Shown piece by piece: positions 6,332 to 42,992 of a stretch of 64,000 bases of DNA. The stretch lies in sequence record OQ992562.1. One strand, 5' to 3'. The notes beneath the pieces were generated by a model. That model ran no database searches. It was given only the letters and a program-made list of their open reading frames with translations, and was not told the DNA's origin. The position numbers were made by a program, and so were the translations under genes. Positions within the stretch are counted from its first letter, which is position 1; every line of letters begins with the position of its first letter.

Positions 6332-6398
6332 ACCCTCCCTTCGGGGAGGGTTTTATTTATCTTTTTTTGTATTTAAACTATTTAAAAAGCTATATTAC
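6332..6398 (+). promoter_or_regulatory. terminator hairpin plus early promoter (TATATTAC 6391-6398)
   Basis: accctccc-ttcg-gggagggt, T tract, gtatttaaactatttaaaaagcTATATTAC. Confidence 0.8.
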
Positions 6399-6431: not shown

Positions 6432-6695
6432 ATGACTGAACGTTTGAAATCCGTATGGTGCGCTTGCAGCTTACTGCGTGAACGCTGGAGACACATCCAA
6501 GACATTGCTGTCGGGGATGAACATCATGTCATAGTAAAAAACGATATGCTGATGGTGTTTCGTGGTCAAGTACCGGTAGGTAGCATGTACCGGGGTGACA
6601 GTGACCCACTCATCTACGAGGGTGGTGCACTGGAAGAATTTACTAAAGTTGTATTGGATTTAGAATTCAATACTCGTGGTGAAACCAATAGTTAA
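6432..6695 (+). CDS. hypothetical protein
   Basis: 87 aa ORF, GAGG RBS, first gene after early promoter. Confidence 0.75.
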   Translation: MTERLKSVWCACSLLRERWRHIQDIAVGDEHHVIVKNDMLMVFRGQVPVGSMYRGDSDPLIYEGGALEEFTKVVLDLEFNTRGETNS

Positions 6696-6721: not shown

Positions 6722-7129
6722 ATGAAATATGTAATTGCATTTATGTTGTCTATTGTAACTATCACTGCTAACTCGGCTGTCATGTACACTAATCGTGATT
6801 CATGCATCGAGTTTGTAAAACAGGCAGATGAATTGTTTGTAAAAGGTGCATCTGTAACTGAAGTGCAAATGAAGACTTATGAAAGGATTCATTATATCCT
6901 TAATAACACTAAAGATCTAAAGACCAACCAGTCTAAAGTTGAAGAACTCACTGGTCTATTTTACCTATGGTCTAAGGTAGATAAAATGGCAATTGAGGCA
7001 AGTTTGCCACGTGCAACAAATGCTGCTAAAGTCTATAAGACCACTCCTGAGAAATTCATCATTGATGGTTATTTCCAGCGTTGTGTAGCGGCAGGTGCGT
7101 TTGAAGCAAAACCACTTACTCTAAAATAA
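6722..7129 (+). CDS. exported two-Cys helical protein, paralog 1
   Basis: Signal peptide MKYVIAFMLSIVTITANSA; DSC near N-terminus, QRCVAAG near C-terminus. Confidence 0.75.
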   Translation: MKYVIAFMLSIVTITANSAVMYTNRDSCIEFVKQADELFVKGASVTEVQMKTYERIHYILNNTKDLKTNQSKVEELTGLFYLWSKVDKMAIEASLPRATNAAKVYKTTPEKFIIDGYFQRCVAAGAFEAKPLTLK

Positions 7130-7141
7130 TGGAGGTACAAC

Positions 7142-7501
7142 ATGCTTAAGAATTGGCTATTATTCCTTTTCCTGCCAATCCTGTCCATTGCATGTCAGCC
7201 TGCCCACGCTGTAGAAGTGGGTATTACTAAGAAATCATGTAATGTGGCAGTAAATCTTTCACAAAAAGCAACTGAGCTTTATGATAAGAACCTATCCCAA
7301 TTTGAGATAATGATGCAGTTAGACATGATCTCTCGTAAGGATATGGATGACTTGGAGTTCTATGCAGGTGCGGTATATGCCAAGTTAAACTTAGTTGATA
7401 TTCGAGTAAATAAACGAAAAGGATTTACCAATGGAGCTATCCTAGATAGGTTAGCTGAAAATTGTGTTGAAGCAATTGGTACTAAATTTAACTTGGAGTA
7501 G
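7142..7501 (+). CDS. exported two-Cys helical protein, paralog 2
   Basis: Signal peptide ending PAHA; TKKSC...CVEAIGTKF. Confidence 0.75.
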   Translation: MLKNWLLFLFLPILSIACQPAHAVEVGITKKSCNVAVNLSQKATELYDKNLSQFEIMMQLDMISRKDMDDLEFYAGAVYAKLNLVDIRVNKRKGFTNGAILDRLAENCVEAIGTKFNLE

Positions 7502-7504
7502 ACT

Positions 7505-8299
7505 ATGATTAGTATCTATATTGTCATTATGCTCATGGCTATGCTAGCTGCATTGACATGTGGTAATTTGGTAGATAGTTGGGTAAGGCCAGCTATTCTA
7601 AAATGGTTGAATGATGATGTTGCTATTCATTTCACCAAGGCCACCTGGATGGTTGGGGGAATCCCTAATGATGTTCCAGTGCAACTAGGTAAAGCTGTTT
7701 GGTTACCCAAATACGTGGGTGATGGAATACGTCTTTACATTACGGCTGATGAAATAAAATTTGGATGGAATGGTAAAGAAAAAGATGCTTTAGCACGAGC
7801 CATTGTTGAAGTTATCTTTATCGGTAAGAATCCAAATAGTAAACTTCTTGAAGTAAGTATTAAACCTATTTGGTTACACCCTTCTATCCAAAAAGAAAGT
7901 TTCTATTTAATGTTTGATTGGGAAAAGCTTTATACAAAAAATGAAGAGATGCGTATTTGTTGGAAGACAATACGTCACACTTTTTTCTATGGATTCCTAG
8001 GTTTGCTATTTGGCGGTAGTGCCAATGCAGATAACCTTGTATTAACTGAACGTGGATGTGATCAATATGAAGCAATGGTGAGAACTATTGCATCTAAAGC
8101 TTATATTGGATTAGATCCAGTTATGGGTAGGGAATTCATTATTAATGATCCTGATATGTTAAATGCCCGTGAGAAAGCACAACGTAATACCCGTATCATT
8201 ATCGATATGGTGGAAACTGGACAAGAACCCAAAGACATTGCATTATGGATGAATACTCAATGTAAACAAGAAGCAGTGTCAAATTTAATCAAACAGTAA
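7505..8299 (+). CDS. membrane protein whose C-terminal half is paralog 3 (possible internal start at 7949)
   Basis: N-terminal hydrophobic stretch; internal MRICWKTIRH-FFYGFLGLLFGGSANA signal peptide followed by TERGC...TQCKQE. Confidence 0.7.
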   Translation: MISIYIVIMLMAMLAALTCGNLVDSWVRPAILKWLNDDVAIHFTKATWMVGGIPNDVPVQLGKAVWLPKYVGDGIRLYITADEIKFGWNGKEKDALARAIVEVIFIGKNPNSKLLEVSIKPIWLHPSIQKESFYLMFDWEKLYTKNEEMRICWKTIRHTFFYGFLGLLFGGSANADNLVLTERGCDQYEAMVRTIASKAYIGLDPVMGREFIINDPDMLNAREKAQRNTRIIIDMVETGQEPKDIALWMNTQCKQEAVSNLIKQ

Positions 8300-8312
8300 A
8301 AAAGGCATAGAT

Positions 8313-8696
8313 ATGAAAAGAAATTTTGAAGATGATCACGTGGTAATGGCAGTGGAAGTATATGAGAAACTGAAAGAAGCTGCTGCTTATTCATTACACT
8401 CTTCTGAAATTAGTAAGATCGAACGACATATGCGTAAGTTTAATCGTGTTCAACGCGATAAACATATTGAAAATATGCATATGGAAATGCTTGAGAAACG
8501 CGAGGCTATTAGAAAAGCAAAATCTTTCTTTTCTCAAAATGCCGGTAAAATTGGTTGCGTAGTAGATAGGCTTGTCAAAGTATGTGAAGTGTATAAAATG
8601 GATAAGTCTATGGTGGTTGTTGAGTTTCTCCAACATAAATCTAAAATTAAAGTTCCAGTAAATCCTGAAAAAATTACTATTCTTACCATTAAATAA
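8313..8696 (+). CDS. hypothetical cytoplasmic protein
   Basis: 127 aa ORF. Confidence 0.7.
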   Translation: MKRNFEDDHVVMAVEVYEKLKEAAAYSLHSSEISKIERHMRKFNRVQRDKHIENMHMEMLEKREAIRKAKSFFSQNAGKIGCVVDRLVKVCEVYKMDKSMVVVEFLQHKSKIKVPVNPEKITILTIK

Positions 8697-8713
8697 ATGA
8701 AGAAGGATTTAAA

Positions 8714-9169
8714 ATGAAAAATGTAATTGCAGCAGCTTTCGCTGGTCTCATTGCCATTACCGGTATCATGTTCAATACCGCAATGGCTGAAATCAAGATT
8801 GGTAAAAAAGATGCTCAACTCACTGTGCAGTCGTGTGCAATGGTTGAAACCATTACTAAACAAGCTGTATTTCGAATGAGTGAAGGTCATAGCGCAGATG
8901 AAGTTGGTGTGCTTATGCTCAACAACTCTGCTAAACTCAAAGATGAGTTGGATACCAATAATTGGATTGCGTTAACATTCGTATTCAATAGTCTTAATAA
9001 AATCAATAATGACCTTAACAGTAAAGAGATCCATGATTATATCCGTAGTCAAGGTTACAATGTGACTACTCCTAATCTGGCAGCTTTTATCAGCGGGTAT
9101 TATGGCAATTACTGCATGAAGCATATTGGTGAGAAATTCACTCACATGGTAATTGTTGAACTCATTTAA
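8714..9169 (+). CDS. exported two-Cys helical protein, paralog 4
   Basis: Signal peptide ending TAMA; TVQSC...CMKHIGEKF. Confidence 0.75.
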   Translation: MKNVIAAAFAGLIAITGIMFNTAMAEIKIGKKDAQLTVQSCAMVETITKQAVFRMSEGHSADEVGVLMLNNSAKLKDELDTNNWIALTFVFNSLNKINNDLNSKEIHDYIRSQGYNVTTPNLAAFISGYYGNYCMKHIGEKFTHMVIVELI

Positions 9170-9201
9170 TTCATATCGAATACTTTCAAAAGGAAAATAG
9201 G

Positions 9202-9579
9202 ATGAAATACGTCTTCTCGCTCATTATCACTATGGTAGCAATGTCGGTTAATGCACAACCCGTAACCGTGTCATCTTGCTACGTGCTGCACAGCTTGGCA
9301 AAGAATATGGTTCAATTCTACACTAATGGCGGTGAGCCATTGGAGATGTATGCAATACTGCAAGATGAACTATCCATTGCCATAGATAAAAACCAGAGTG
9401 ATAAGGCACTCGCTATTAATATCGCATTGGATAATGTCGATGTAATATACCAAAATCTCACTGATCCCGCACTTAAGCTTTTGGCAAAGAGCGAGGGAAG
9501 TGATCTTGGTGAGATGCTGACTGAAAAACTCAGTAATGGGTGTTTCAATATAGTCGGCGAGGAGTTGTATGATAACTAG
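9202..9579 (+). CDS. exported two-Cys helical protein, paralog 5
   Basis: Signal peptide ending SVNA; TVSSC...CFNIVGEEL. Confidence 0.75.
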   Translation: MKYVFSLIITMVAMSVNAQPVTVSSCYVLHSLAKNMVQFYTNGGEPLEMYAILQDELSIAIDKNQSDKALAINIALDNVDVIYQNLTDPALKLLAKSEGSDLGEMLTEKLSNGCFNIVGEELYDN

Positions 9580-9808
9580 AATCATCCTAATTGTTGCATG
9601 GGTATGGGTAATCTCTCTTATGGGAATGATTACGTATGTTCTTTATGATACGTATCAATTTCGTAAGAAATTAGAAATGCCTGTTGTAGAATGGGAAGAT
9701 AAGGCGAAGGACACTCCTGTTAAGAAGTGTCCAGATGAAGTATTATTCGCTGAAGACCCAAAGGATGGCAAACTCAAAATGGGATGCCCTGAGAGTTATA
9801 AGAAATAA
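9569..9808 (+). CDS. single-pass membrane protein with two C-terminal Cys
   Basis: IILIVAWVWVISLMGMITYVLY; KKCPDE...MGCPES. Confidence 0.7.
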   Translation: MITRIILIVAWVWVISLMGMITYVLYDTYQFRKKLEMPVVEWEDKAKDTPVKKCPDEVLFAEDPKDGKLKMGCPESYKK

Positions 9809-9810
9809 TT

Positions 9811-9834
9811 AGAGGACCTTCGGGTCCTCTTTTT
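9811..9834 (+). terminator. intrinsic terminator closing the exported-protein operon
   Basis: agaggacc-ttcg-ggtcctct plus tttt. Confidence 0.85.
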
Positions 9835-9890: not shown

Positions 9891-9998
9891 ATGCAACTTA
9901 GTAATGAACTTTTCTATGTGGGTATGGTAGCTGTATCAATGTCAATCGGTATGCTATTTAGCTATATTTATCACACTCATAAGAAAAAATATAAATAA
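9891..9998 (+). CDS. 35 aa single-TM microprotein
   Basis: Read manually: [35 protein letters not shown]; GAGGA RBS; hairpin 10008-10027 follows. Confidence 0.6.
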
Positions 9999-10054
9999 AG
10001 TCATAAACCCTCTCCCAAAGGAGAGGGCTTTTACATTAAATTTTTTTTGAAATC

Positions 10055-10062
10055 TATATTAC
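10055..10062 (+). promoter_or_regulatory. early promoter core TATATTAC
   Basis: Motif after hairpin, upstream of ORF 10102. Confidence 0.65.
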
Positions 10063-30491: not shown

Positions 30492-31223
30492 ATGACATAT
30501 ATCGTAAATGATGGTAAAGTCATGATTGCAGACTGCCTATTAATTGAGCGGAATAATGCAACTGATAGCATTGGGCGACTTCCAGTATTAGATAACGGTT
30601 ATATTGATCTAACTGCTAAAGCTGAAGGTGTAGATGTATATTACAATGATTGCCACAAGATAATTTTTCATCCGACTGTTACTTGGCAAGGCAAACGTGT
30701 TAAAACTATGGCTTTTGCTGGAACTATAGATAATGTTTATGATCTATTGAATGCCCTTACCGCAGGTGTTGATTTAGCTGATTGGTTTAAAGTTGAAGTA
30801 AATATCTTGCCAGTCATAGAACGCAGGTTGTTTAATGGTAATACTTCTATGATGTTCACTATGGAGAATGGTGACATATATACAGTTATTCTTAAAGACA
30901 TGGGTATCAACATCACCAAGAAAGATTGGGCTCATTTGGGTAGTGGTGTAGATGCAGTTAATAGTGTACTTGAGTTTATCCCTAATTGTAATGATAATGG
31001 ATCAACCAAACTAACTGCACTTGAAGCATTTGCTATTGCATGTGCACATACTACTACTGTAAGTCGTAAATTTGATTATTACATCCATGCTACAGGTGAG
31101 TACAAGCAAAATCAAGAACTATCAACTAAACAACTAAAATGGATACTAGCGCGCATTCAAAAGCGGATGGATCTTACCCGCATTTTCAATGACCGCGAAT
31201 ATGCCAATAACATATGGGGTTGA
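30492..31223 (+). CDS. Ntn-hydrolase (HslV/proteasome-beta-like) protein
   Basis: Met-Thr start MTYIVNDGKVMIAD, AFAG, HLGSG, ALEAFAIAC; AAGGAG RBS. Confidence 0.6.
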   Translation: MTYIVNDGKVMIADCLLIERNNATDSIGRLPVLDNGYIDLTAKAEGVDVYYNDCHKIIFHPTVTWQGKRVKTMAFAGTIDNVYDLLNALTAGVDLADWFKVEVNILPVIERRLFNGNTSMMFTMENGDIYTVILKDMGINITKKDWAHLGSGVDAVNSVLEFIPNCNDNGSTKLTALEAFAIACAHTTTVSRKFDYYIHATGEYKQNQELSTKQLKWILARIQKRMDLTRIFNDREYANNIWG

Positions 31224-42578: not shown

Positions 42579-42992
42579 CTACATTATATCTCGTGTACCA
42601 TCATTCATTTCAACAACAGTGACTTTATCACCAACCTTTGGTTTTTCATTGGTAACTGTTTGAACCATGTACTGCTTGCCATCTGTATTAACAATCAGTT
42701 TACATTGAAATGTTTCAGTAGCACTAACATTATTACCGACTGCGCCGCCTGCGGCACCACCGATTAAACCACCTACCCAACCTCCAGATTTACCAAAGAT
42801 TGCTCGACCTAACACAGCGCCTGCGGTGGCTCCAACCGCACCTCCAACAGTAGTGCCGACAACACTACTATCTTTAGCAACTAGCTGACATTCTGAATGT
42901 GCAATAATACCATCTGTAGTTGATTTTACTTCAGTTGCTGCAAATAGGACAGTGGACCACATTAAAACTACGAATGCGATAATCTTAATCAT
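42579..42992 (-). CDS. exported glycine-zipper 2TM protein (SlyB/17 kDa antigen-like)
   Basis: Signal peptide ending LFA; GTTVGGAVGATAGAVLG...GGLIGGAAGGAVGNNV; C-terminal PKVGDKVTV. Confidence 0.8.
   Translation of the reverse strand: MIKIIAFVVLMWSTVLFAATEVKSTTDGIIAHSECQLVAKDSSVVGTTVGGAVGATAGAVLGRAIFGKSGGWVGGLIGGAAGGAVGNNVSATETFQCKLIVNTDGKQYMVQTVTNEKPKVGDKVTVVEMNDGTRDIM

Follow-up and report, generated by a model that had tools for sequence, protein, structure and literature searches.

The window analysed here is a 64,000-nucleotide stretch of sequence record OQ992562.1, and close to its start lies a compact run of small genes that a preliminary description had taken for a tandem array of five diverged, exported paralogs, each with one cysteine near either end. 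Region 6300-9900 matches Pseudomonas phage PA7 at 100% identity and phiKZ at 99.1%, and the 47 records that match it all belong to phiKZ-like phages of Pseudomonas aeruginosa; the array is gp247-gp253 of Pseudomonas phage PA7/phiKZ. The five open reading frames (ORFs) singled out at first, with starts at 6722, 7142, 7949, 8714 and 9202, correspond to gp247, gp248, gp249, gp251 and gp252, with gp250 in between, gp253 last and gp246.1 first in the unit. All proteins of the unit are annotated as 'hypothetical', a Shine-Dalgarno-like sequence precedes every annotated start, and our literature search found no study on gp247-gp253. From gp247 onwards the genes are as follows (aa, amino acids; pI, isoelectric point).

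6722-7129, + strand: gp247, signal peptide at aa 1-18, Cys28 and Cys121; a possible distant family member (gp247 type)
7142-7501, + strand: gp248, short-type member with a lipobox-like Cys18, an A-x-A site at aa 21-23 and domain cysteines Cys33 and Cys108
7505-8299, + strand: gp249, membrane protein with a probable C-terminal family domain that holds Cys185 and Cys253
8313-8696, + strand: gp250, 127 aa, no export signal; interrupts the array and is not a family member
8714-9169, + strand: gp251, long-type member, signal peptide at aa 1-25, Cys41 and Cys134
9202-9579, + strand: gp252, family member, signal peptide at aa 1-18, Cys26 and Cys114; very acidic, pI 4.2
9569-9808, + strand: gp253, 79 aa, one N-terminal hydrophobic segment, cysteines at 54 and 73; overlaps the end of gp252

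Export was judged by a rule that requires a basic residue, an uncharged hydrophobic stretch and then a small-x-small site, and it is throughout a prediction from sequence. The N-termini of gp247, gp248, gp251 and gp252 satisfy this classical signal-peptide rule, and gp249 carries an N-terminal hydrophobic segment plus a signal-like segment inside the protein, at aa 158-175. Signal-like starts were found in 17 of the 412 ORFs of the window, and six of the 17 are adjacent to one another at 6722-9808. All five copies combine an export signal with exactly two cysteines in the mature part, the first 8-16 residues past the predicted cleavage site and the second 11-18 residues before the C-terminus, with 68-93 residues between the two. 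The Sec-type N-termini and the terminal cysteine pairs of the preliminary description are therefore present, internally so in the case of gp249, while its sequence motifs hold for part of the array: T-x-x-(S/G)-C fits four of the five copies, with gp247 having its threonine at -5 instead of -4 relative to the first cysteine, and C-x3-(I/V)-G near the C-terminus fits gp248, gp251 and gp252 but not the other two.

We then asked whether the copies are related. Pairwise BLAST scores among them are near noise, the best being 29 bits for gp251-gp252, and identity is below 20%, as would be expected if the array were a set of unrelated small exported proteins merely having a signal peptide and two cysteines. 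Profile comparisons argue otherwise. gp248 has orthologues in phiPA3 (gp303), Phabio, PS119XW, Psa21, RVTF4, 201phi2-1 and Viktualia, and in several of these phages the genes adjoining the orthologue also encode signal-peptide proteins with two cysteines. When the profile of the gp248 orthologues, stripped of signal peptides, was run against 419 ORFs, its best non-self matches were gp251, Psa21_333 and gp252. A domain-only family hidden Markov model (HMM) recovered gp248 at E 6e-28, gp251 at E 3e-20 and gp252 at E 6e-15, leave-one-out hhalign returned gp251 at 97.5% and gp252 at 95.3%, and the three best non-members for the HMM among the same 419 ORFs were gp249, PS119_31 and gp247. The best relatives of gp251 are Psa21_333, RVTF4_61 and PS119_30. 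Both cysteine columns are invariant in an alignment of 44 sequences, every one of which has exactly two domain cysteines, 71-93 residues apart; a threonine at -4 of the first cysteine (30/44), a hydrophobic residue at +4 of the second (36/44) and a glycine at +5 of the second (38/44) are less strictly kept. Altogether, gp248, gp251 and gp252 firmly belong to one family. The case of gp247 is weaker: it aligns with the family colinearly from end to end with both cysteines in register, at a P of 0.009 by hhalign, and it forms a reciprocal best match with PS119XW QEM42031, with which it has a C-terminal motif in common. Its membership is possible, the likeness being one of shared architecture only.

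The domain at the C-terminus of gp249 is a probable further member. The protein consists of a hydrophobic segment (aa 3-20), a middle domain (aa 21-157), the signal-like segment (aa 158-175, nucleotides 7976-8029) and the family domain (aa 176-264, nucleotides 8030-8296). A metagenome contig of 195.7 kb, L016 (8322-9080), keeps this layout at 30% identity (E 2e-40); there the gp249-type gene again comes after genes of the gp248 type and for an HD-domain protein resembling gp246. Aligned with the family by hhalign, the domains of three orthologues, from phiKZ, L016 and a diverged phiKZ relative on the Logan contig L008, gave 78.7% and a P of 1.7e-5 over 83 columns, again with both cysteines in register, whereas six unrelated neighbouring genes used as controls gave P >= 0.1. 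The second hydrophobic segment of gp249 has basic residues before it and acidic residues after it, and from these flanking charges we infer by the positive-inside rule that the family domain is periplasmic and the middle domain of about 135 aa, for which no known relatives were found, cytoplasmic. The preliminary description had placed an exported ORF of its own at 7949. Because the ATG at this position has no Shine-Dalgarno sequence at a usable distance, and because the fused layout is conserved as one protein of 252-264 aa, we rejected a separate gene starting there and assign the region to gp249 as a domain. The internal segment looks exactly like a cleavable signal peptide, and gp249 could yield two products or could span the membrane twice.

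To obtain a fold for the family, we predicted the structure of gp248 from Cys18 onwards with AlphaFold2, using a 45-sequence alignment. The model (predicted local distance difference test, pLDDT, 93.3; predicted template modelling score, pTM, 0.83) comprises five helices between a short opening strand and a closing one, and the invariant cysteines lie where helix 1 begins and helix 5 ends. Foldseek matched it in BFVD to phiPA3 gp303, Psa21_331, two 201phi2-1 proteins, further Phabio and PS119XW proteins and Psa21_333. The same search returned a 151-aa entry (probability 1.00), a 264-aa entry (probability 0.97, TMq 0.69, 94 columns) and PS119_31, a relative of gp247 (probability 0.90, TMq 0.57). 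The 151-aa and 264-aa entries have exactly the lengths of gp251 and gp249 and belong to a shared accession series, and we take them to be these proteins; gp252 could not be identified among the BFVD matches listed. The model of gp247, from 8 sequences, was poor (pLDDT 57), and a fold search with it returned gp247 itself only. Of the five paralogs proposed at first, three are thus firm and the gp249 domain probable, by profile similarity as well as, for gp248 and the gp251- and gp249-length entries, by predicted fold; gp247 falls short on both counts, although its relative PS119_31 is among the fold matches.

Among solved structures the gp248 model had no Foldseek match in the PDB at E 0.001. 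The best matches were saposin C, saposin A and Na-SLP-1, all non-significant (E 0.6-1.0, probability 0.75-0.82, TM score 0.49-0.63, or 0.55-0.63 by target), and T4 Spackle, Rap1a and Tai4 were absent from the best 50 of the 110 matches with E <= 10. The Rap1a/Tai4-like immunity fold that the preliminary description had considered thus gained no support from these matches. Comparison of the family profile and of four single proteins with every sequence in the PDB recovered none of the Spackle chains (6X6O, 6XC0, 7CN6) at E <= 10, and prosaposin appeared at a non-significant E of 1.2-1.4. Pfam and NCBIfam gave nothing above noise for any protein of the unit, and no relative of the family was found in either or in the PDB. 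Each protein is its own PHROG of unknown function, gp251 reaching the PHROG of gp248 at E 0.0026 only. A word-index protein search returned near-identical relatives only, a viral-contig search with the gp247 alignment returned the phage itself only, and tblastn with gp251 gave no match beyond phiKZ-like phages. The family, which is well supported as a set of small exported proteins with a signal peptide and a helical domain of 90-130 aa bearing two invariant cysteines, is real, new to databases and uncharacterised.

The members appear to differ in where they are placed. A cysteine within the signal peptide occupies one alignment column in 24 of the 44 members, 14 of them in a canonical lipobox context, where the strict lipobox was defined as [LVI]-[ASTVI]-[GAS]-C closing the hydrophobic region. 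gp248 and its orthologues are among the members with such a cysteine, the Phabio protein being named 'Lipoprotein' in UniProt, and these proteins may be lipoproteins and not soluble. The lipobox of gp248 itself is atypical, with a serine at -3 that lies outside the strict rule and within the looser PROSITE-type rule, and lipid anchoring is likely but not certain. gp251, gp252 and gp247 have signal peptidase I-type sites only, and gp251 and gp252 are predicted to be soluble forms. As both cysteines are invariant and the proteins carry export signals, a disulfide between them is to be expected.

Expression of the unit was assessed from the signals that flank it, which are listed here.

6332-6351, + strand: intrinsic-terminator hairpin closing the upstream unit after gp246; stem of 8 bp, 6 of them GC pairs, with a T run after it
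6362-6398, + strand: phiKZ early-promoter motif, an AT-rich upstream element plus TATATTAC at 6391-6398
9811-9830, + strand: hairpin after gp253, a weak or partial terminator; 8-bp stem and a T run of 5 that includes the last stem base
10008-10027, + strand: strong terminator hairpin after gp253.1, with the next TATATTAC motif at 10055

The octamer TATATTAC is the phiKZ promoter core as published (PMC7058600), and the virion RNA polymerase uses AT-rich early promoters of this kind (PMC8244752, PMC10914365). The copy at 6391 stands directly behind a terminator, and its extended upstream motif is common to the sites at 2888, 12740, 48882, 49386 and 51237; both the hairpin at 6332-6351 and the promoter motif are kept in L008. 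In phage Churi, the protein homologous to gp248 is present 15 min after infection (PMC11849849). Taken together, the upstream early-promoter motif and the early appearance of the Churi homologue agree with an early phiKZ gene, and gp247-gp253 are well supported as one early transcription unit. Its proposed end at 9811 does coincide with a hairpin, but the T run there is short and the stronger terminator lies at 10008-10027. Across the window, TATATTAC sites with common extended flanks occur at 2888, 3320, 6391, 10055, 12740, 24698, 48882, 49386 and 51237, all on the + strand and several directly 3' of terminator hairpins; these sites look like a window-wide set of early promoters. The flanks are absent at 30637, 31254, 9442 (-) and 17137 (-), which look like chance matches.

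To see how widely the family occurs, we searched 1.84 billion representative proteins with the profile and obtained 40 clusters at E <= 0.001, 104-178 aa in length and all with an N-terminal signal. Isolates that carry the family are Pseudomonas chimalliviruses only. Ten further clusters that were looked up come from metagenomes only, several on jumbo-phage-sized contigs of 98-317 kb and the others on short ones. At the syntenic locus, phiPA3, Phabio, 201phi2-1 and Viktualia have a single copy, Psa21 and RVTF4 have 2, PS119XW has 2 together with a gp247-type gene, and the metagenome contigs have 2-3; the fold matches suggest more copies elsewhere in some genomes. With three firm copies, one probable and one possible, phiKZ has the largest known set.

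The diverged relative L008 retains promoter and terminator together with the full set of seven genes, gp247-gp253, at 60-96% amino-acid identity (72-96% leaving out gp250), and every cysteine is kept. Ratios of nonsynonymous to synonymous substitution (dN/dS) against L008 are 0.08-0.16 for gp247 (0.08), gp249, gp252 and gp253, gp248 and gp251 being left without a dS estimate. Within the unit, gp253 is the best conserved (96% identity) and gp250 the fastest evolving (60% identity, dN/dS 0.23), and the genes with a dS estimate are, from these sequence comparisons, under purifying selection. The earlier term 'diversified' thus applies to the deep divergence among the copies, the mature parts of which range in pI from 4.2 (gp252) to 8.8 (gp247), and not to recent evolution. 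A viable phiKZ with a transposon insertion in orf252 has been described, as has the largely non-essential character of orf184-304, a region enriched in host-interaction or defence-related genes (bioRxiv 10.1101/2025.11.23.690004).

These facts point to accessory, early, envelope-directed binding modules that present very different surfaces on one rigid scaffold. A closely comparable arrangement is known from T4, where the early protein Spackle (gp61.3) has a cleaved signal peptide and a mature part of 75 aa that folds into a five-helix bundle and inhibits the gp5 tail lysozyme of superinfecting phage in the periplasm; its disulfide runs from a cysteine 7 residues past the cleavage site to one 16 residues from the end (PMC7677548, PMC7650644). 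As T4 Spackle is the closest known design, we rank a protective role of this kind first, as a tentative reading: the phiKZ proteins may be periplasmic binder or inhibitor modules, deployed in the periplasm itself and at both the outer and the inner membrane, and may act in the manner of Spackle. On this model the virion RNA polymerase would transcribe the unit within minutes of infection, Sec would export the proteins, and the two invariant cysteines would be oxidised in the periplasm. The common scaffold, with surfaces as different as pI 4.2-8.8 implies, would be set at the outer membrane, left free in the periplasm and held at the inner membrane, and the copies would stoichiometrically bind or inhibit proteins active in the periplasm. 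The likeliest targets would be the cell-wall-degrading or penetrating parts of the tails of phages arriving later, several copies would provide for several targets, and the infected cell would be protected as T4 Spackle protects against the gp5 tail lysozyme.

Several observations favour this proposal. An accessory role in conflict is consistent with the tolerance of orf252 to a transposon, with the restriction of the family to Pseudomonas chimalliviruses and metagenome contigs (the longest 196-317 kb), with a copy number that varies from 1 to 5 between genera, and with the wide divergence in surface charge. Three placements are suggested by the lipobox-like cysteine in 14-24 of the 44 members, depending on how strictly the lipobox is read, and by the internal signal-like segment of gp249. 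That the proteins have a real function is indicated by low dN/dS, by the retention of all cysteines, and by the recurrence of the array and the gp249 layout in distant jumbo-phage contigs. The resemblance to Spackle extends to an early, phage-encoded, small helical exported protein with one cysteine near the cleavage site and another near the C-terminus. The phiKZ family differs in having terminal strands, a domain of 90-130 aa compared with 75 aa, several copies, and lipobox-bearing and membrane-tethered forms.

Other points weigh against the proposal. Since neither the fold search nor the sequence search joined Spackle to the family, the parallel is an analogy of design and not of shown fold or ancestry, and the best matches among solved structures were saposins, which bind lipids. 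Inhibition of a defined enzyme, the gp5 lysozyme, is known for Spackle, whereas for the phiKZ family both target and binding are proposed by analogy. Nowhere in the literature that we searched is phiKZ described as excluding superinfecting phages. Export, signal cleavage, lipidation and disulfide formation are all predicted; the lipobox is non-canonical in the Psa21/RVTF4 clade, and in gp248, where it is atypical at -3 and followed by the A-x-A site, cleavage by signal peptidase I is equally possible.

Early phage proteins of the envelope can also exclude later phages by another route. T5 Llp and Cor of phi80/N15 are early phage envelope lipoproteins that block later phages by masking an outer-membrane receptor. 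The lipobox-like cysteine of the gp248 orthologues is reminiscent of them, but their fold and sequence differ, they mask a receptor, and most phiKZ copies have no lipobox. T5 Llp is described as a superinfection-exclusion lipoprotein in bioRxiv 10.1101/2022.06.28.497910.

The same early, exported modules with diverse surfaces would also fit if the proteins were directed at the host, as binders or decoys that inhibit host peptidoglycan hydrolases, proteases, envelope-stress sensors or envelope-located defence and so keep the cell intact and silent. The enrichment of orf184-304 in non-essential genes for host interaction or defence agrees with this, and isolates from a single host genus are what host-specific targets would lead one to expect. 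On the other hand, there is no Pfam or NCBIfam match to an anti-defence or inhibitor family, folds of lysozyme inhibitors and of immunity proteins of the type VI secretion system (T6SS) are missing from the best 50 of the 110 PDB matches of the gp248 model, and the host partner is hypothetical. We regard host-directed binding as unlikely.

The saposin matches raise a further alternative, in which the bundles would open to bind phospholipid, lipopolysaccharide or the acyl chains of lipoproteins and either remodel or stabilise the envelope through the long latent period or aid formation of the membrane-bound early infection vesicle. Saposin C, saposin A and Na-SLP-1 head the list of fold matches, prosaposin also surfaces in the sequence search, and the family shares with saposins a compact helical bundle in which the cysteines lie in the first and last helices, positions that disulfides tie together in saposins. 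Moreover, according to references cited in PMC11849849, chimallivirus infection begins in a lipid vesicle. Yet none of these matches is significant, and small helical bundles easily match one another. Saposin-like proteins are eukaryotic lipid binders with three disulfides (six cysteines) and lack the terminal strands, whereas the phiKZ family has one cysteine pair in all 44 members and no sequence relation to them. Some copies are strongly charged, gp252 having a net charge of -10, and five very different surfaces are not obviously needed for one lipid job. A lipid-binding function therefore seems rather improbable to us.

It has been proposed that phiKZ, the lysis of which is slower at high multiplicity, has a lysis-inhibition-like system with an unidentified periplasmic signal (PMC12894885), and the copies might accordingly be sensors of lysis timing that detect a later phage in the periplasm, with gp249 signalling to a cytoplasmic holin regulator. 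The model would be the antiholin RI of T4, likewise an early exported phage protein that is periplasmic and reports superinfection (PMC12894885). In gp249 the exported module is indeed joined to a predicted cytoplasmic domain of about 135 aa, in a layout kept at 30% identity, although this topology is itself a prediction. The T4 holin has a large periplasmic domain, to which RI binds, whereas that of the phiKZ holin is small; the known regulator, gp143, is cytoplasmic, the lysis cassette gp141-144 lies far away, and no similarity to RI was detected. We consider such a sensor improbable. Equally speculative, and no more credible, is a combined scheme in which the array would serve detection and relay across the whole periplasm, with soluble and lipid-anchored copies capturing tail parts of a second phage and gp249 passing the event inward to feed lysis-inhibition-like behaviour. 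A function in lysis proper, as spanin or antiholin, was set aside on account of the phiKZ lysis cassette, gp141-144.

Rap1a and Tai4, small helical proteins of the periplasm, neutralise incoming cell-wall enzymes. A comparable immunity against peptidoglycan amidases of type VI secretion would suit small periplasmic helical proteins with a probable disulfide, and P. aeruginosa lives among T6SS-armed bacteria; with no Rap1a, Tai4 or other T6SS immunity protein in the best 50 PDB fold matches or the PDB profile search, and no Pfam or NCBIfam immunity match, we think it very improbable. Least credible of all is the absence of any family, given the leave-one-out hhalign results for gp251, gp252 and the gp249 domain, the behaviour of the controls, the ranking of gp249, PS119_31 and gp247 as first non-members, the fold matches and the invariant cysteine columns, the near-noise pairwise scores and the doubtful position of gp247 notwithstanding.

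Two further ORFs border the array.

6432-6695, + strand: gp246.1, an 87-aa ORF without an export signal, first in the unit and not a family member
9891-9998, + strand: gp253.1, a 35-aa hydrophobic ORF between two hairpins, with a Shine-Dalgarno-like GAGGA upstream

The RefSeq annotation of PA7 has only a shorter version of gp246.1, and the ORF is absent in L008, where the promoter sits directly upstream of the gp247 homologue; it may not be a genuine gene. gp250, which interrupts the array, corresponds to PHROG 26931, and over its first 80 aa it matches phrog_18482 as well (E 7e-13). With one hydrophobic segment and two cysteines, gp253 is the two-cysteine, single-transmembrane protein that the preliminary description had made of it. 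Small one-transmembrane, two-cysteine ORFs like gp253 also follow family members in Phabio (L004 5351-5506), in PS119XW (L005 6348-6518) and in L015 (8452-8652). Those of Phabio and PS119XW have in common a C-x2-Y-P-L-x-C motif that is not found in gp253, and the likeness among all these ORFs is one of layout.

Some other entries were noted in passing. The annotated start of PS119XW QEM42029 (L005 4908-5336) adds 25 aa before the signal peptide; since the annotation of the PA1C orthologue gives 118 aa, translation probably begins at the internal Met. In the window, ORF 42579-42992 (-) encodes 137 aa with a signal peptide, two cysteines and a long glycine-zipper stretch, and is likely an envelope protein; it was rejected as a sixth candidate, being a glycine-zipper protein and not a family member. 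A 1045-aa match, P0062 (E 1e-7, 14 stretches), was left out as probably spurious, since it is a Cys-rich repeat protein with a eukaryotic-looking N-terminus. Short 'partial' NCBI proteins labelled Klebsiella pneumoniae (P0003-P0006, P0036, P0037, P0079, P0095-P0103 and others) are near-identical to pieces of phiKZ gp246.1-gp252 and come from contigs of 200-1200 bp; they look like carry-over of phiKZ-like DNA into assemblies and not like Klebsiella genes.

phiKZ is the model nucleus-forming jumbo phage, and work on it has mostly concerned the cytoplasm, with its nucleus, vesicle and polymerases. The unit described here indicates that the phage also sends a dedicated, expanded family to the cell envelope within minutes of infection, as far as export can be predicted. 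This family is now defined by a profile, a fold predicted with high confidence and its invariant cysteines, with three placements predicted and about 40 clusters counted. If its members are lipid binders or bind host enzymes, they point to an unstudied envelope step in jumbo-phage infection. If they are Spackle-like inhibitors, they would constitute the first superinfection-exclusion or envelope-protection system described for chimalliviruses, and an independent evolutionary solution on the design of Spackle.

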